A stretch of DNA of 64,000 nucleotides from the sequence record NC_019401.1, one strand, 5' to 3'. Made by a program: the position numbers and the translations under genes. Positions within the stretch are counted from its first letter, which is position 1. Each line of letters begins with the position of its first letter. Below, piece by piece: positions 3,725-23,637 of the stretch. The notes under the pieces were generated by a model. The model saw only the letters and a program-made list of their open reading frames with translations. It was not told the DNA's origin and ran no database searches.

Positions 3725-3838
3725 GTGGAGTTCGTCTAGCGGCCCAGGACACGAAAAGCGATTCTTGACTAAGAATCTTACGGCATTTATAACTTTCATT
3801 TCACGAACGTAACATGGGTTCGAATCCCATACTCCACT
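3725..3838 (+). tRNA. tRNA-Glu(TTC) interrupted by a 41-nt insertion (3754-3794) at position 28/29
   Basis: GTGGAGT/ACTCCAC acceptor; Glu-type D arm; A26-C-G|insert|TTC-ATTTCAC-GAA-CG; T arm ATGGG-TTCGAAT-CCCAT. Confidence 0.85.
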
Positions 3839-5055: not shown

Positions 5056-5411
5056 TGAAAGTATATGTTGATGATATTCGTAATCCAGAAAACCATCTCA
5101 GTGCTGAACAGGCCGAAGGAATCCACTGGAAAAAAGAATGGTGGGAAGCAAAGAACTTTATCTTCGATAACTGCGAAGAAATTGAAACTATTCATCTGGA
5201 TAATTTCTTAGGTGATAGTACACATACTGGTGCAGATATACTTCGTATGATAACTCGTAGTTTAAAACGAGGTATGTTCCCTAAACTGAAACAAATTTAT
5301 ATTCACAGTTCTGACAAAGAAGTTGTGAATAATTTATATAACTCTCAGATCGAGCGTTGTAAAGAAGCAGGTGTTGAGTTAATAAAAAACTCACGTCCTA
5401 ATCGTACTTAA
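5055..5411 (+). CDS. cyclic-phosphate-processing receiver (cREC-like) domain protein, copy 2
   Basis: MKVYVDDIR...IHLDNFLG...TGAD...IYIHS; tandem paralogue of 4690-5055. Confidence 0.7.
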   Translation: MKVYVDDIRNPENHLSAEQAEGIHWKKEWWEAKNFIFDNCEEIETIHLDNFLGDSTHTGADILRMITRSLKRGMFPKLKQIYIHSSDKEVVNNLYNSQIERCKEAGVELIKNSRPNRT

Positions 5412-5419
5412 TAAAATAT

Positions 5420-5546
5420 GGCGAGTTAGCTCAGTGGTAGAGCACGTATGAAACCCAGGATTCCTGTACTTGAATCCCGCAGCAACTATAACTCTCAAGC
5501 CTTTTAAGCTCGTGGTCGGGGCGTTCGAATCCCCCACTCGCCGCCA
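5420..5546 (+). tRNA. tRNA-Lys(TTT) interrupted by a 51-nt insertion (5447-5497) at position 28/29
   Basis: GGCGAGT/ACTCGCC acceptor; GCTC/GAGC D stem; ACG|insert|AGC-CTTTTAA-GCT-CGT; T-loop; CCA encoded. Confidence 0.85.
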
Positions 5547-5562
5547 AATACAGGATAAAAAT

Positions 5563-5796
5563 ATGTCAATTTTTTCTGAAATTAAAAATAGTTTTTTAAA
5601 TGCTGTTAAAACTGATGTTTCTTTCGTAGATCCAGCAATTGCACGTGAGCAATCATCTAAGTCAGTAAATCCTACTACTTATGATCGCTATCAGAAGTAT
5701 CATTTTACGTCTGGAGAAATGTCTAAAATGGACAAAGTACTTGGAAATTCCATTAATGCTGTAATTGATAATATTAAAAAGGGTATCATTAGCTGA
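5563..5796 (+). CDS. hypothetical protein
   Basis: The true start is probably ATG 5563 (AGGA RBS); the 5470 start lies inside the tRNA. Confidence 0.6.
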   Translation: MSIFSEIKNSFLNAVKTDVSFVDPAIAREQSSKSVNPTTYDRYQKYHFTSGEMSKMDKVLGNSINAVIDNIKKGIIS

Positions 5797-9089: not shown

Positions 9090-9305
9090 ATGGCTAAGAA
9101 TATTATTACTGATATTGGCGAAGTTGAACGTACTGTGAACTACATCCAGTTCCAGATTTCTCAGGCAGATGCAATGCTTGCACCATTCGCCAACAGCGAT
9201 AAATCCAAGATCTGCTATGCACATCTTCTGGACTGGAAGAAATCATTGCAGAACGAACTGCATGAGATCCGTAAAGCTCAGCAGAAAGCACGTTACCACA
9301 AGTAA
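9090..9305 (+). CDS. hypothetical protein
   Basis: ORF track. Confidence 0.6.
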   Translation: MAKNIITDIGEVERTVNYIQFQISQADAMLAPFANSDKSKICYAHLLDWKKSLQNELHEIRKAQQKARYHK

Positions 9306-9369
9306 TGTGAAGCCACGCCGCCAACATAGTTGGCGGTACTTTTAAGTTAGGTATAAAGGAACTGGAACC

Positions 9370-9612
9370 ATGAAAAGTGCAACGGAACTTAAAAACCTTC
9401 ATAAACGTATCCAGCAATTGAAAAGTCAGCAAAAGTTATTGAATGTTGAATATGCTGAACTGGATGCTAAAGAAAAGAAAACCAAAGATGAAACTAAACA
9501 TCTTGCCGCAGTACGCAATTTGCAGTGGTCTTTGATTTACAAAATTCGTGGTCTTGAATTAACGTTTAAAGACCTAAAAGAGCAAGTTATTCTCGAAATC
9601 ATCAATTCGTAA
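9370..9612 (+). CDS. coiled-coil hypothetical protein
   Basis: ORF track; heptad pattern. Confidence 0.6.
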   Translation: MKSATELKNLHKRIQQLKSQQKLLNVEYAELDAKEKKTKDETKHLAAVRNLQWSLIYKIRGLELTFKDLKEQVILEIINS

Positions 9613-10602: not shown

Positions 10603-10722
10603 GGAATCTTACAGCAAAAATAATTAATTTTTGATGAAAACAAAACGACGGCGGTTCGAATCCCCACCCACGATTTGCCTTATTTAAAGTGGGAGCATGG
10701 TGCTGGATAAACAAGAGATTCC
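10603..10722 (+). ncRNA. ACAGCAA element, permuted tRNA-like form
   Basis: GGAATCT/AGATTCC outer helix, ACAGCAA, T-loop GGTTCGAATCC, CCCAC/GTGGG acceptor-like helix. Confidence 0.75.
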
Positions 10723-10745: not shown

Positions 10746-11282
10746 ATGAACATATACAAAATTGCAAAAGAATTGATGAATAAGCACAATCTACAGGATT
10801 GGTCTTTCGAAATTTATGAAAGTTCAAATAAGCGTGTTCCTGGAACAACCAATACAATTGGAATGTGCATCTATCATGAAAAAGTTATCGCCATTTTAGA
10901 AGCGGTTGCTTATAGTCGTAGTGAAGAATATGTTCGTAGTTTAATATTGCATGAAATTGCACATGCATTAGCTGGTCATGAAAATGGTCATAATGAAGTA
11001 TGGCAGAAAATTGCAATAGAAATTGGTTCTAAACATATCACATCATGTGCAAACATGATTGAGTTTTTAAACCATAAAAATACAATCCGCAATTGTACTC
11101 ATCCGTATGTTTGGAAATTTATGAAGTATTTTTCAAATACTGATGAGTTAGTATTCAACTTAAACCGTATACACGGTAAAAGTACACAGTACTGGTATAA
11201 TGAATATCTAAGGATTTTAAAGTTTCAGGAACGTTTAAAAAAACGTAAAAAAATTGAAACGAATCAAAAATTTGTGGTATAA
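10746..11282 (+). CDS. SprT-like zinc metalloprotease
   Basis: LILHEIAHAL...GHNEVWQKIA (HExxH plus GH..W); start moved to ATG 10746. Confidence 0.8.
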   Translation: MNIYKIAKELMNKHNLQDWSFEIYESSNKRVPGTTNTIGMCIYHEKVIAILEAVAYSRSEEYVRSLILHEIAHALAGHENGHNEVWQKIAIEIGSKHITSCANMIEFLNHKNTIRNCTHPYVWKFMKYFSNTDELVFNLNRIHGKSTQYWYNEYLRILKFQERLKKRKKIETNQKFVV

Positions 11283-11283
11283 T
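11255..11283 (+). promoter_or_regulatory. TGAAAC-N17-TATAAT promoter (RNA-gene class)
   Basis: TGAAAC 11255-60; TGTGG-TATAAT to 11283. Confidence 0.75.
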
Positions 11284-11300
11284 AAAAGTATTAGCAACAC

Positions 11301-11418
11301 GAAATCTTACAGCAAACAATATCTTATATTTTTTATGCGAAAAAAACGATGTGGTTCGAATCCACAACAACCATGTTGCTATGTTGGTTGTGCATGGGGC
11401 TAGAAAACAACAGATTTC
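11301..11418 (+). ncRNA. ACAGCAA element, permuted tRNA-like form
   Basis: GAAATCT/AGATTTC helix; ACAGCAA; TGTGG-TTCGAAT-CCACA; ACAACCA/TGGTTGT. Confidence 0.75.
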
Positions 11419-11604
11419 AGTTCTTTAATTAAGACAAATAGGACAACGGTAATGACCGCAGAAGAAAATTTAGAAATCCTTAGCAAAATTCTTGATGGAA
11501 TTAGTAATGGTAAATTAAATGAAGTAATGTCCGAATTAGGTTTTGACGTATCCAAAAGTACAGATAAAAGTACCGAATGGGTAAACAAAAACCAATAACA
11601 ATTA

Positions 11605-11676
11605 GTTCCCATCGTCTAGCGGCTAGGACGCTTCCCTTTCAAGGAGGAAACCGGAGTTCGATTCTCCGTGGGAACG
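11605..11676 (+). tRNA. tRNA-Glu(TTC), uninterrupted
   Basis: GTTCCCA/TGGGAAC; CTTCC-CTTTCAA-GGAGG. Confidence 0.92.
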
Positions 11677-11688
11677 CAAAGTAGTTTT

Positions 11689-11770
11689 GGGGAGTTGGCA
11701 GAGCGGTCGAATGCACCTGACTGTAAATCAGGCACACCACACCCTGGTTCGAATCCAGGACGCCCCACCA
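11689..11770 (+). tRNA. tRNA-Tyr(GTA)
   Basis: CCTGA-CTGTAAA-TCAGG; T arm CCTGG/CCAGG; CCA. Confidence 0.92.
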
Positions 11771-11771
11771 A

Positions 11772-11878
11772 AAGAATCGCACAGCAAACATAAATCTTAT
11801 ATATTTCATTTGGCGAAAAACACCTTCGGTTCAATTCCGATTTACCACTGGTTGTGGGGATAGAAAAACACGATTCTT
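11772..11878 (+). ncRNA. ACAGCAA element with Gln-like anticodon arm and T arm (permuted)
   Basis: AAGAATCG/CGATTCTT; TTTC-ATTTGGC-GAAA; TCGG-TTCAATT-CCGA. Confidence 0.7.
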
Positions 11879-11905
11879 GTTTTTAATTTAGAAAATAAAA
11901 TGACG

Positions 11906-11985
11906 GAAGTGGGATTTAAACAGCAAACTAACCCTTTACTGAAAATCATATAGTAGATGGATTACTCGGAATTTCGATTCCCTTC
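11906..11985 (+). ncRNA. ACAGCAA element, degenerate
   Basis: GAAG(T)GGGA/TCCCTTC helix; ACAGCAA at 11920. Confidence 0.5.
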
Positions 11986-12106
11986 TTAATCATTACTCGC
12001 ACAGTATTAAAACAGTGTATTGTTTAAGTTCGTCAACTTATTCAATTATCCTTTTATTAAATCCCGTATAATAAAGTACTTAAATCCTATTGGACAGTAC
12101 TTTTAT

Positions 12107-12201
12107 GGAAGATTGGCAGAGTCTGGTTTATTGCACCGCACTTGAAATGCGGCGAACTAGTAACCCTAGTTCCTACGGTTCAAATCCGTAATCTTCCTCC
12201 A
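12107..12201 (+). tRNA. tRNA-Ser(TGA)
   Basis: GGAAGAT/ATCTTCC; CCGCA-CTTGAAA-TGCGG; long variable arm; CCA. Confidence 0.95.
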
Positions 12202-12207
12202 AATCTT

Positions 12208-12330
12208 GGGAAAGTAGCTCAGTTGGTAGAGCAGGTAAGAAAACCCAAATTACTGTATTGTAATTTCACAGCAACCATACTTCATCCACTTTTAATGGCC
12301 TGGTCGTTGGTTCAAATCCAACCTTTCCCA
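12208..12330 (+). tRNA. tRNA-Lys(TTT) interrupted by a 50-nt insertion (12236-12285) at position 28/29
   Basis: GGGAAAG/CTTTCCC; GCTC/GAGC; AGG|insert|CCA-CTTTTAA-TGG-CCT; GTTGG-TTCAAAT-CCAAC. Confidence 0.85.
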
Positions 12331-12333
12331 CAC

Positions 12334-12395
12334 AGAATCTAACAGCAAACCTTATTTTATCAAACTTTTACTTTGAAACCAAAATAATAGATTCT
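12334..12395 (+). ncRNA. minimal ACAGCAA element displaying a Lys(UUU) anticodon stem-loop
   Basis: AGAATCTA/TAGATTCT; CAAA-CTTTTAC-TTTG. Confidence 0.7.
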
Positions 12396-12422
12396 AGTAC
12401 TTTTAAATTCGAGAAGAATATA

Positions 12423-12824
12423 TTGGAAAATGATGAAATTGAAAATATGTTAGTTGAAGCATTGCGTAAAATCGACACTTCATCATATGAGTTTAAATCT
12501 TCCAAAGAGATTTCGAATTCGGAATTTGGTTCTGATGGAAAGCGACAATACTTAAAACTGTTTTTTGAAAAAAGTTCAGGGGAAGTAAGTATAGAATTCA
12601 TTTATCATTCTATAAAAGATACGTTAAAATTCAGAACTCAATATGTTGACCATTGTGATGAAGATGAAGACTTTGATGAAACTAGCATATCGCAAAAAAT
12701 ACCGCGAACTGAAGAAGAATATTTTCAGTACAGCACTATCCAAAATAATATTTTTAGTTTAGAGTTTTATACTTTATTAGAAAAGATAATGTCAGAATTG
12801 CTAGTAAAGTGGAAATCTAAATAA
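12423..12824 (+). CDS. EExxFQxST-family hypothetical protein
   Basis: C-terminal RTEEEYFQYSTIQ motif shared with eight other ORFs. Confidence 0.7.
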   Translation: MENDEIENMLVEALRKIDTSSYEFKSSKEISNSEFGSDGKRQYLKLFFEKSSGEVSIEFIYHSIKDTLKFRTQYVDHCDEDEDFDETSISQKIPRTEEEYFQYSTIQNNIFSLEFYTLLEKIMSELLVKWKSK

Positions 12825-13076: not shown

Positions 13077-13122
13077 AAGAATCCATACAGCATTACTTTG
13101 GTCAATAATATATTGGATTCTT
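13077..13122 (+). ncRNA. minimal ACAGCA element (possible Gln-UUG loop)
   Basis: AAGAATCC/GGATTCTT; ACAGCA; CTTTGGT loop. Confidence 0.55.
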
Positions 13123-14053: not shown

Positions 14054-14192
14054 AAGAATCTAACAGCAATTCAATTGTTAACTAAAAATAGCTGCCTCGC
14101 GGCATGTAGGTTCGAATCCTACGAACTATGTCAGTACTGAATAGTGATGGTGAAACAGGTAGACACGGCTATCAACACAAACATAGATTCTT
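14054..14192 (+). ncRNA. ACAGCAA element enclosing a circularly permuted tRNA-Leu-like sequence
   Basis: 3' half (ATAGC, variable arm, GTAGG-TTCGAAT-CCTAC) precedes 5' half (ATAGTGA-TG-GTG-AAACAGGTAGA-CAC-G-GCTAT). Confidence 0.8.
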
Positions 14193-15459: not shown

Positions 15460-15580
15460 TGGAATTCAACAGCAAATCAATTCTATCCACGCAACATGTC
15501 GCAGGTTCAAGTCCTGCCAGTACTTTCGAGTACTGTAGCTCAGTTGGTAGAGCAGTCGCCTATAAAAGAAATGAATTCCA
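15460..15580 (+). ncRNA. ACAGCAA element enclosing a near-perfect circularly permuted tRNA
   Basis: GCAGG-TTCAAGT-CCTGC, CAGTACT-TTCG-AGTACTG, TA-GCTC-AGTTGGTA-GAGC; TGGAATTCA/TGAATTCCA outer helix. Confidence 0.85.
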
Positions 15581-15871
15581 GTTTTAATTTATATTGGAGA
15601 AAAATATGTCAAAAATTATTAAGTCTATTAAAAGTGATTTGGAAAAGATGGTATCTTTAGGATTAGCATCAACTGAAACGGTTAATAAAGTTATTCCAAT
15701 TTCTAATGTTTCTTCGAAGAAGAATTCTAAAAAGAAATAAATTCAAGTTTTAATCAAATTCACCAGTCGTACTATGGTTTGACACGGATAGCATGTTATC
15801 CTATTAAGGTCAGAATAGAATACGTATTAGTTCCTTGGTCGGAACTTATGTAAACTCAATTTGTACTAATT

Positions 15872-15925
15872 TAGAATCTAACAGCAATTAAAACTTCTCG
15901 GATATAGAAAAAACAATAGATTCTA
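15872..15925 (+). ncRNA. minimal ACAGCAA element
   Basis: TAGAATCTA/TAGATTCTA; TTCT-CGGATAT-AGAA hairpin. Confidence 0.7.
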
Positions 15926-16198: not shown

Positions 16199-16262
16199 GG
16201 AATCTAACAGCAACCATATATTGAACTCAACTGTTAATTGAAAACCTCAAAAAATGGATTCC
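16199..16262 (+). ncRNA. minimal ACAGCAA element displaying an Asn(GUU) anticodon stem-loop
   Basis: GGAATCTA/TGGATTCC; TCAA-CTGTTAA-TTGA. Confidence 0.75.
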
Positions 16263-16401: not shown

Positions 16402-16465
16402 AAGAATCTTGCAGCAAACATATTAAACATATTTTTTGGGTAAATAAACGTTAAAACGGATTCTT
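16402..16465 (+). ncRNA. minimal GCAGCAA element displaying a Pro(UGG) anticodon stem-loop
   Basis: AAGAATCT/GGATTCTT; ATTT-TTTGGGT-AAAT. Confidence 0.7.
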
Positions 16466-17208: not shown

Positions 17209-17264
17209 TAGAATCTAACAGCAATTAAAACTCATTTGGATAATATGAAAAACAATAGATTCTA
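17209..17264 (+). ncRNA. minimal ACAGCAA element (near-copy of 15872-15925)
   Basis: TAGAATCTAACAGCAATTAAAACT...GAAAAACAATAGATTCTAG. Confidence 0.7.
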
Positions 17265-23546: not shown

Positions 23547-23619
23547 ACCTCGTTAACTCAGTTGGTAGAGTAACGGTCTTTTAAACCGTGAGTCGCTGGT
23601 TCGAACCCAGCACGAGGTA
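23547..23619 (+). tRNA. tRNA-Lys(TTT), uninterrupted
   Basis: ACCTCGT/ACGAGGT; ACGGT-CTTTTAA-ACCGT. Confidence 0.93.
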
Positions 23620-23637
23620 CTAATATTAAGGAATATA

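Follow-up and report, generated by a model that had tools for sequence, protein, structure and literature searches.

A handle module shared by interrupted tRNA-Lys genes and anticodon-arm mini-elements of jumbo phage GAP32 is genomically coupled in other phages to a Ro60-like protein gene

What is a 50-nucleotide (nt) insert doing in the anticodon stem of a phage tRNA gene, and why is that gene followed almost directly by a small element displaying a second, anticodon-like arm? The question arises at positions 12208–12395 of a 64,000-nt stretch of sequence record NC_019401.1 (here called the window), which is 100% identical to Cronobacter phage vB_CsaM_GAP32, a 359-kb myovirus and jumbo phage of the genus Mimasvirus. 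An interrupted tRNA-Lys(UUU) gene at 12208–12330 stands there beside a 62-nt mini-element at 12334–12395. The original prediction, made from the letters of the window, had recognized both and had placed them under selection by anticodon nucleases. We find that insert and mini-element are circular permutations of one module, in which a covarying stem is followed by an invariant (N)CAGCAA(A)C motif, and that RNAs carrying this module, the handle, are genomically coupled to the gene of a Ro60-like protein.

Results

Aligned to the Rfam tRNA model (RF00005), 12208–12330 forms a full cloverleaf (49.5 bits, against a gathering score of 29) whose anticodon-arm region takes up 65 nt where 15 nt are expected; ARAGORN called no tRNA at this position. 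Exon 1 (12208–12235, + strand; Rfam 49.5 bits, model R1 122 bits) comprises the acceptor 5′ strand, the D arm and positions 26–28, and ends GAGCA-GG. The 50-nt insert (12236–12285, + strand), delimited by alignments, stem covariation and a motif match, holds the module in hairpin form. It consists of an A-rich 5′ linker (12236–12246), a stem-loop (12247–12266, AAAUUAC-UGUAUU-GUAAUUU), CA plus CAGCAAC (12267–12275) and a tail (12276–12285). Exon 2 (12286–12330, + strand) resumes with CCA (positions 29–31), the loop CUUUUAA (12289–12295), UGGCC, the variable loop, the T arm, the acceptor 3′ strand and the discriminator A. A contiguous 17-nt anticodon stem-loop of the decoding type is absent, the insert splitting positions 28/29; instead, GG plus CCA pairs with UGGCC around the canonical Lys loop. 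An annotated 39-codon ‘membrane protein’ open reading frame (ORF), GAP32_431A (12229–12348), falls entirely within the interrupted tRNA-Lys and the first part of the mini-element and is therefore probably spurious.

Another interrupted tRNA-Lys(UUU) occupies 5420–5546 (+ strand; model R1 104 bits), with a 51-nt insert at 5447–5497 and an encoded CCA. Its exons differ from those of the 12208 copy (acceptor GGCGAGU versus GGGAAAG), the insert lies at 28/29 in both, and the insert hairpin is compensated (AGGAUUC/GAAUCC versus AAAUUAC/GUAAUUU). The 5420 copy escaped ARAGORN, as well as the Rfam tRNA model at its gathering score, because of one additional G in the T arm (GGGGCGUUCGAAUCCCCC, within window positions 5520–5546) and the encoded CCA end; the T arm of the orthologue in phage CBB is normal. 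Copies of the 5420 type are conserved in Serratia phage BF, Yersinia phages fHe-Yen9-03/04, the pEa_SNUABM phages and Vibrio phage D479. An uninterrupted counterpart, intact tRNA-Lys(UUU), is called at 23547–23620 (+ strand) by both ARAGORN and Rfam. The cloverleaf score and direct reading thus uphold the predicted interrupted tRNA-Lys, with its 50-nt insert at 28/29 and exons unlike those of the 5420 copy, and the two programs agree with the prediction on the intact gene at 23547.

The CBB orthologue of the 12208 gene (L002:1206–1324) retains both tRNA body and handle, but its anticodon region consists of a stem of 5 base pairs (bp) topped by a 10-nt loop (AUAUAUGAAA). Orthologous RNAs in relatives are annotated as tRNA-Ser(AGA), tRNA-Phe, tRNA-Undet, tRNA-Pseudo or tRNA-Lys. 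BF (L007) and fHe-Yen9-03/04 (L006:319–439 and L193) share an interrupted tRNA body, on which BF has a Lys arm (ACA-CUUUUAA-UGU) and the Yersinia phages an Ile(GAU) arm (ACU-AUGAUAA-AGU); the whole anticodon arm is swapped between these close relatives.

The 62-nt mini-element (12334–12395, + strand), found by motif scans and conserved in CBB, XbC2 and Kaldavass, holds the module in permuted, outer-stem form. Its outer stem AGAAUCUA/UAGAUUCU joins 12334–12341 to 12388–12395 through 8 bp, the motif ACAGCAAAC follows at 12342–12350, an inner helix pairs 12352–12358 with 12381–12387, and the Lys-like arm CAAA-CUUUUAC-UUUG spans 12361–12375. The Lys-anticodon mini-element described originally is real and its arm was read correctly, but it starts 3 nt past the discriminator base and not 4. 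Outer stem and ACAGCAAAC are invariant in the four phages GAP32, CBB, XbC2 and Kaldavass, and the inner helix shows compensatory change. The Lys-like loop of this particular mini-element is not conserved in the closest relatives, being CCUAACC in CBB and differing in XbC2 and Kaldavass.

In the insert, the parts run in the order A-rich linker, stem-loop, NN-CAGCAAC and tail; in the mini-element, they run stem 5′ strand, ACAGCAAAC, cargo, A-rich linker and stem 3′ strand. The stem and the CAGCAAC part are common to both and occur in permuted order, as had been proposed. A covariance model built from interrupted-tRNA sequences aligned 51 matches, 46 of them distinct. Across the 46 distinct homologues in this alignment, itself a fit to the model, pairing reaches 91% in the insert hairpin, with double changes at all seven of its pairs, and 99% and 87% in the split anticodon stem; all helices lie at 87–100%. 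None of 500 shuffles matched the observed pairing values, and slid registers fell to ~40% paired. The compensatory changes first noted between the two Lys copies belong to a hairpin that covaries throughout the homologues, in which stems change and the motif stays fixed. Within the window, CAGCAAMC occurs eight times, seven of them on the + strand, against 2.8 expected. Two further pairings were tried and rejected. A P0 helix between 5′ linker and 3′ tail, beside both junctions, forms in some homologues (contig L206) and is impossible in close relatives (L213), and was dropped; cis pairing of CAGCAAC with the D loop or T stem is not conserved.

Such a pattern bears on the idea that a selfish repeat, similar to a miniature inverted-repeat transposable element or a repetitive extragenic palindrome, or else a processing or terminator hairpin, landed in tRNA genes and turned them into pseudogenes. 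That many copies with similar stems (GAAUC) share one genome, that the BF copy is annotated tRNA-Pseudo and that an HNH endonuclease gene follows the pEa50 copy would suit mobile DNA. We nevertheless judge this origin very improbable, as stems covary around a fixed motif, all copies lie on the transcribed strand, exons stay perfect cloverleaves across very distant phages and orthologous positions are conserved between genera.

To define the family beyond GAP32, IMG/VR was scanned with the pattern GTAGAGCA..CAGCAAC..GGTTC. The scan gave ~30 further interrupted tRNAs in unrelated contigs, with inserts of 39–65 nt placed between 28/29 and 31/32, and the anticodon stem re-forms across the insert in every one of them. 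Looser scans (GTAGAGCA..CAGCAAC and AATCTNACAGCAAAC) returned chiefly chance matches. Anticodons of the Lys, Ile, Asn, Arg, Gln, Leu, Val, Ala, Phe and Ser types are all represented, and a tRNA-Glu in the window (3725–3838) is interrupted as well; the insert is not the tRNA-Lys peculiarity that it had appeared to be. In every testable case, the interrupted tRNA duplicates an intact tRNA with the same anticodon: Lys (23547) and Glu (11605) in GAP32, Ile(GAU) in contig L155 and Ser(GCU) in contig L165. Because of this redundancy, the interrupted tRNAs fit a role in anticodon-arm display rather than one as sole decoding genes.

The most direct competing explanation is a true intron, in which the module would be a splicing signal cut at G|UA...U|N and the exons would be joined to a decoding tRNA-Lys. 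Excision would leave a nicked anticodon stem for a phage ligase, permuted copies would circularize their cargo, and the Ro60-like protein might serve as a platform. Re-formation of the anticodon stem in all homologues, with covariation, agrees with splicing, as do the mostly canonical loops with many different anticodons and the usual start of the insert with UA after an exon G. The module also occurs in both intron-like and permuted arrangements, including a permuted tRNA-like gene common to Xanthomonas phage XaC1 and the unrelated contig L165. This resembles the bulge-helix-bulge introns of archaeal and algal permuted and split tRNA genes, where one motif is likewise found inside tRNAs at non-canonical positions and, permuted, at their ends; the phage module, however, lacks such geometry and is defined by primary sequence. 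Hand folding of the L206 and GAP32 inserts gave no 3-4-3 geometry and made a bulge-helix-bulge impossible. At 39–65 nt and within a stem strand, the inserts do not correspond to a group I core either (at least ~200 nt, in the anticodon loop). Rfam searches at expect values (E) up to 10 over 12150–12450, 5300–5700 and 11200–12120 detected no intron family and, among ribozymes, a single chance-level Hatchet match (16.8 bits, E 2.4, gathering score 51); hand comparison revealed no fit to hammerhead, hairpin, pistol or twister cores. No endonuclease candidate was found, and to our knowledge EndA-type endonucleases do not occur in phages. Moreover, the insertion point drifts from 28/29 to 31/32, every testable interrupted tRNA is redundant with an intact one, and many permuted cargos have closed acceptor-like hairpins or a 4-bp arm only and cannot become tRNAs. 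The permuted arrangement is exactly that of the bacterial Y RNA YrlA, which is not spliced (PMC4201824). On this evidence, a spliced intron is possible but doubtful, and the insert is probably not an ordinary intron.

What the module carries was surveyed in 152 distinct mini-elements. These cannot be tRNAs, yet their commonest 7-nt hairpin loops all have the anticodon-loop form CU-NNN-AA: CUUUUAA/C (Lys) was found in ten, CUCAUAA (CAU) in five and CUGUUAA (Asn) in four, with CUUGAAA, CUUGUAA and CUGAAAA (UGA, UGU and GAA) also common. Minis with the CUUUUAA/C loop occur in GAP32, XbC2, Kaldavass, XaC1 (twice) and the IMG/VR loci L155, L168, L175 and L356. Display of Lys(UUU) anticodon loops, noted for GAP32, thus recurs in many phages and tops the list of 7-nt loops. 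A gap without annotation, upstream of the gene for the head maturation protease of XaC1, houses a tandem array of four module RNAs (L010:250–700). Among these, two minis are nearly identical and display a perfect Lys loop (CAAA-CUUUUAA-UUUG), and another RNA has a permuted tRNA-like cargo whose design is near-identical to that of L165. The L165 contig, which has a Ro-like gene and 22 other tRNAs, also holds at 9301–9375 (− strand) an ARAGORN tRNA with a CUA anticodon, labelled Pyl, a possible amber suppressor.

Recurrent mimics of Lys, Asn, Glu and other anticodon loops, in a phage that also keeps intact copies, are what a protein-independent decoy, as bait or competitive inhibitor, for tRNA-Lys anticodon nucleases (PrrC, RloC or AriB of PARIS) would look like. 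In such a decoy, the hairpin would only block use or turnover of the RNA, and any link to the Ro60-like protein would be indirect. We consider it improbable, since it leaves unexplained why a 7-nt single-stranded motif is invariant from mycobacteriophages to enterobacterial jumbo phages and why tRNA-like RNAs lacking an anticodon arm are closed by the module as well.

Evidence for a protein partner came from both the RNA and the protein side. ORF clustering in the RNA-pattern loci revealed one family of ~500 amino acids in 12 loci, just downstream of the RNAs, to which Pfam assigned DUF2828 and DUF7788 (a von Willebrand factor A (vWA) domain), with a weak match to the Ro60 vWA domain. When 336 loci were searched by tblastn, 19 that had come from RNA patterns contained a DUF2828 gene, all of them from the tRNA + CAGCAAC + GGUUC scan; none of the loci from the two looser RNA scans had one by tblastn. 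In these RNA-first loci, interrupted tRNAs lie 100–900 nt upstream of the DUF2828 gene on the same strand. Conversely, 80 loci were fetched by protein alone, of which the 75 non-Mimasvirus loci were counted for modules (stem of at least 7 bp plus CAGCAA, up to 700 nt upstream or 500 nt downstream of the gene). At least one module was present on the gene's strand in 51 of the 75, with 104 modules in total, compared to three on the opposite strand. A same-strand adjacency this tight is also left unexplained by a protein-independent decoy. The protein was found in 711 phage records, annotated “Ro-like RNA-binding protein” or similar, and in thousands of metagenomic contigs, and the module-bearing phages with a searchable whole genome all encode it (GAP32, CBB, XbC2, Kaldavass, BF, pEa_SNUABM_*, Yen9-03/04 and XaC1). 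ROT/TROVE proteins “with a tRNA-like partner” in jumbo phages have been noted in a review (PMC7824862). In one contig clade (L134, L153, L177, L205 and L213), a gene for an SPFH/Band-7 protein lies a few kb from the Ro-like gene.

The GAP32 copy of the DUF2828 and vWA protein is GAP32_176 (record position 105,937–107,451). Its AlphaFold model (predicted local distance difference test 87.7, predicted template modelling score 0.84) gave as top PDB matches in Foldseek, at E 7e-10 to 7e-8, a TROVE domain (9kop) and Xenopus Ro60 (2i91, 1yvr and 1yvp; template modelling score ~0.57, E ~1e-8), together with Thermus phage phiLo Ro60 (9l5y) and Deinococcus Rsr (2nvo). A phmmer search of GAP32_176 against PDB sequences gave no match, and the relation to Ro60 is seen by fold comparison only; in its predicted structure, GAP32_176 has a Ro60/TROVE fold with a vWA domain. 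The gene directly follows the RNA ligase gene GAP32_175 (PHA02142 oligonucleotide-binding fold plus PF09414; PF21189) and lies near a tRNA nucleotidyltransferase (CCA-adding enzyme) gene. Salmonella phage PHA46 has the same ligase–Ro gene pair (PF21189 + PF09414). Because the partner gene adjoins an RNA ligase, a link to tRNA damage is plausible; the ligase and the CCA-adding enzyme near GAP32_176 would equally serve a spliced intron. As a universal neighbour of DUF2828, the RNA ligase was ruled out (1 of 75 loci).

Bacterial Ro60 (Rsr) binds YrlA RNAs, whose tRNA mimicry is published (PMC4201824, Chen et al. 2014). YrlA combines a terminal stem that has a conserved 5′-side motif with a mimic of tRNA in permuted order (V, T, closed acceptor-like stem, D); its gene shares a strand with the Ro60 gene and is no more than 4 kb away, and YrlA is also found in mycobacteriophages (PMC4201824). 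The phage module RNAs share much of this plan. They have a terminal stem formed from both RNA ends and a conserved single-stranded motif on the 5′ side, several (15462–15578 and others) carry a permuted tRNA-mimic cargo in the order T arm, closed acceptor-like stem and D arm, and across the family, though not in GAP32 itself, they adjoin a Ro60-family gene on the same strand, with several copies per locus and a link to RNA ligase or repair genes. Scored with the Rfam YrlA model (RF02553; gathering score 69), the permuted elements of XaC1 and L165 reached 40.9 bits (E 7e-8) and 42.1 bits (E 1e-6 to 1e-8 for the two), on a par with the RNA right after the Ro-like gene of mycobacteriophage MsGreen at 39.3 bits; the three matches, all below the gathering score, range from E 1e-5 to 1e-8. 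Three modules occur in the MsGreen region: GGACAC..ACAGCAAU, GGACCCC-ACAGCAAU, which closes the YrlA, and GGACGGU-AACAGCAAC, which has a CUGCUAA loop. As judged from sequence, the ACAGCAA handle spans actinophages to enterobacterial jumbo phages, where it replaces the GNCGAAN0-1G motif of cellular YrlA (PMC4201824).

The differences from YrlA are nonetheless distinct. The partner belongs to the DUF2828 branch, for which sequence comparison gives no match among solved Ro60 proteins. The handle also occurs as a hairpin within complete tRNAs whose anticodon arm is real, and on very small RNAs that show an anticodon stem-loop only; in the pair studied here, 12208–12330 is a full tRNA and 12334–12395 an anticodon-like arm only. 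In GAP32, moreover, the RNAs are scattered through the tRNA region, a long way from the gene of the protein.

A second resemblance leads to the Class I RNAs (RF01414), 42–65 nt in length with an unpaired motif and reported to be unique to Dictyostelia (PMC7919456, Kjellin et al. 2021). In their consensus, a 6-bp stem joins the 5′ end to the 3′ end and is followed by the unpaired 11-nt CCUUACAGCAA and a variable middle. They are eukaryotic, probably RNA polymerase III transcripts with a Dictyostelium upstream sequence element (DUSE) promoter, and their known direct binder is Rnp1A, a protein with RNA recognition motifs; the uncharacterised DDB_G0281243 is one of four proteins pulled down with Class I RNA (bioRxiv 10.1101/2020.04.05.026054). 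The phage minis are similar in length (42–62 nt), read (A)AUCUUACAGCAAAC or AAUCUUACAGCAAAC next to the 5′ strand of the stem and are A-rich on their 3′ side; the mini at 12334–12395, with its 62 nt and 8-bp stem, reads AUCUAACAGCAAAC. Barring tRNA-clan models and two plastid models (tRNA reverse strand only), RF01414 and YrlA were the only Rfam families to match the DUF2828 loci. RF01414 gave four full-length matches (28–32.5 bits) in 64 kb of these loci and also matched three XaC1 minis and the 5′ part of a permuted element of the window, E1 (20.4 bits); the mini at 12334–12395 itself was not matched by RF01414. All phage scores (18–32.5 bits) lie below the gathering score of 41.5.

Model and motif scans placed at least 16 module copies in the window, all between 3.7 and 17.3 kb and on the + strand: three interrupted tRNAs (Glu, Lys and Lys), about seven permuted tRNA-like RNAs and six minis of 42–62 nt. 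The interrupted tRNA-Glu(UUC) at 3725–3838 (model R1 51.8 bits), which is unannotated, has the loop AUUUCAC, an insert at 28/29, the stem GAUUCUU/AAGAAUC and the variant motif UUACGGCAUU; intact tRNA-Glu(UUC) lies at 11605. Inside the terminal stem of the permuted RNAs lie a T arm and a closed acceptor-like hairpin, joined in some by a D arm. The cleanest YrlA-type example, 15462–15578, reads GAAUUCA-ACAGCAAAU-...-T arm-7-bp hairpin with UUCG loop-UA-D arm-...-UGAAUUC, and the homologous architecture is what scores on Rfam YrlA in XaC1 and L165. Also of the permuted tRNA-like type are E1 (11301–11418), whose covarying stems are conserved in CBB, XbC2, Kaldavass, L142 and L224, and E2 (11773–11877), directly after tRNA-Tyr. 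E3 (11913–12063) is a longer module RNA, 10604–10721 has a T-arm-like cargo, and 14056–14192, with a homologue in XbC2 (L003:2697–2832), carries a T arm plus a D-arm-like cargo. Among the minis, 16200–16261 displays an Asn-like arm (UCAA-CUGUUAA-UUGA) and stands 60 nt upstream of an intact tRNA-Asn(GUU) gene with the same loop. The remaining minis measure 42 nt (13079–13120, motif UACAGCAUU), 50 nt (15874–15923), 62 nt (16403–16464, between tRNA-Asn and tRNA-Gln) and 52 nt (17211–17262, a paralogue of 15874–15923).

Directly upstream of E1, a strong sigma-70-type promoter at 11254–11283 (TTGAAA-18-TATAAT with an upstream TG, 11 of 12 matches) is near consensus and suggests early transcription of module RNAs by the host polymerase. 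The acceptor-like hairpin loop of E1, UGUUGCUA, shows perfect complementarity to UAGCAACA, the 5′ leader that immediately precedes the terminal stem (window 11292–11299 and 11374–11381), and both are invariant in six Mimasvirus-type genomes in which the hairpin stem covaries. A role of the loop as trans guide or alternative partner for the CAGCAAC of other modules was judged less likely; because the loop fits E1's own leader and is confined to the Mimasvirus group, a long-range cis pseudoknot is more likely. After the 3′ strand of the terminal stem, a tail resembling (A/U)GU(N)UUUUAAUUUAG is conserved in GAP32 and relatives (12396–12413, 11419–11433, 11878–11893 and 15579–15592) and may act as a signal for processing or termination. 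After their stem, Class I RNAs of Dictyostelium similarly finish with CUGU.

Discussion

On balance, and with moderate confidence, we favour a reading in which handles for a Ro60-like protein have been grafted on tRNAs and anticodon-arm mimics that probably act in tRNA-damage conflict; the RNAs are probably phage particles of the Y RNA type. The handle, a 6–9-bp stem followed by single-stranded (N)CAGCAA(A)C, would be the putative docking site for the Ro60-like ring protein GAP32_176. In 12208–12330, it is predicted to branch off the 5′ strand of the anticodon stem through a three-way junction, with anticodon loop, acceptor end and elbow all left undisturbed; in 12334–12395, it would close a bare Lys-like anticodon stem-loop. 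Both particles could then present tRNA-Lys anticodon arms while carrying the protein and, by analogy with bacterial Rsr and YrlA, the RNA may tether the protein to whatever recognizes the arm. The most plausible partners would be host anticodon nucleases, which might be trapped or sequestered by a decoy, or broken tRNA, which might be brought to repair or quality control with the neighbouring ligase. The fold is supported by covariation, and the family with its two topologies, the genomic coupling and the Ro60 fold of the protein model are observed; what we infer from them is that the protein would bind the handle, the insert would persist in the mature RNA, and the particle would serve as decoy or in repair.

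Several observations weigh against this. In most interrupted tRNAs, the anticodon stem is still a canonical 5 bp and the loop still of the U33/R37 type, and relatives differ in anticodon (Lys in BF, Ile in Yen9-03), all of which a decoding tRNA spliced from a precursor would show as well. The junction is biased to G|UA, a possible cleavage signal. The module motif is ACAGCAA(A)C and not the published GNCGAAN0-1G, and all Rfam YrlA scores (at most 42.1 bits) stay below the gathering score, as do those for Class I. GAP32_176 lies ~190 kb from the RNAs (~298–312 kb of the record), so that adjacency is borrowed from other phages. Finally, the ligase adjoins the DUF2828 gene only in the Rak2-like group and in one of the 75 other loci.

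Phages are known to counter anticodon nucleases, either by repair, as with T4 Pnk/Rnl1 acting on PrrC-cut tRNA-Lys, or with resistant substrates, as with the nuclease-resistant tRNA-Lys of T5 against PARIS. The GAP32 system is similar in displaying tRNA-Lys(UUU) and other loops in extra copies and in having an RNA ligase in the neighbourhood of the partner gene. It differs in that an extra copy either bears a protein handle or consists of a bare stem-loop, a design suggestive of tethering or sequestration and not of simple replacement of cleaved tRNA. Selection by anticodon nucleases around tRNA-Lys, as proposed from the window at the outset, may be part of this picture.

A wider and more tentative proposal is that the handle marks a very large class of Y RNAs partnering the DUF2828 branch of Ro60-like proteins, whose eukaryotic members would be the Class I RNAs, alike in motif, motif position, stem and size and bound by a protein of the DUF2828 type, and whose phage members would display anticodon arms to neutralize tRNA-targeting nucleases. 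DDB_G0281243 is a candidate for such a DUF2828-type partner of Class I RNAs.

tRNA-mimicking Y RNAs and their presence beside phage Ro-like genes were already known. On interrupted phage tRNAs, the literature searched yielded one earlier remark, that tRNA gene 13 of CBB needs help for “correct formation” (PMC5259590); neither a handle hairpin inside a complete tRNA nor bare anticodon-arm minis were described there, and the “enigmatic introns” in tRNAs of Lak phages are unrelated (PMC6784885). As far as this literature shows, ACAGCAA as the signature of the DUF2828 branch, the hairpin in complete tRNAs, the bare-arm minis and the Class I match are new.

Ro60 and Y RNAs are conserved from bacteria to humans, and the module RNAs bear on what the tRNA-like part of bacterial Y RNAs does. 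The handle provides a simple sequence predictor of RNA partners for a protein family present in at least 711 sequenced phages. Real tRNAs and bare anticodon stem-loops of the Lys, Asn, Glu, Ile, Met or Thr type are frequent among its cargos, which points to factors that recognize anticodon loops as the tethered targets. The module also accounts for dozens of “tRNA-Pseudo”, “tRNA-Undet” and “tRNA with intron” calls and for spurious small ORFs in jumbo phages. If the particles do block or repair anticodon-nuclease damage, they would represent a new principle of counter-defence; if the link to Class I RNAs is true, it would give those abundant RNAs a protein partner and an evolutionary origin.

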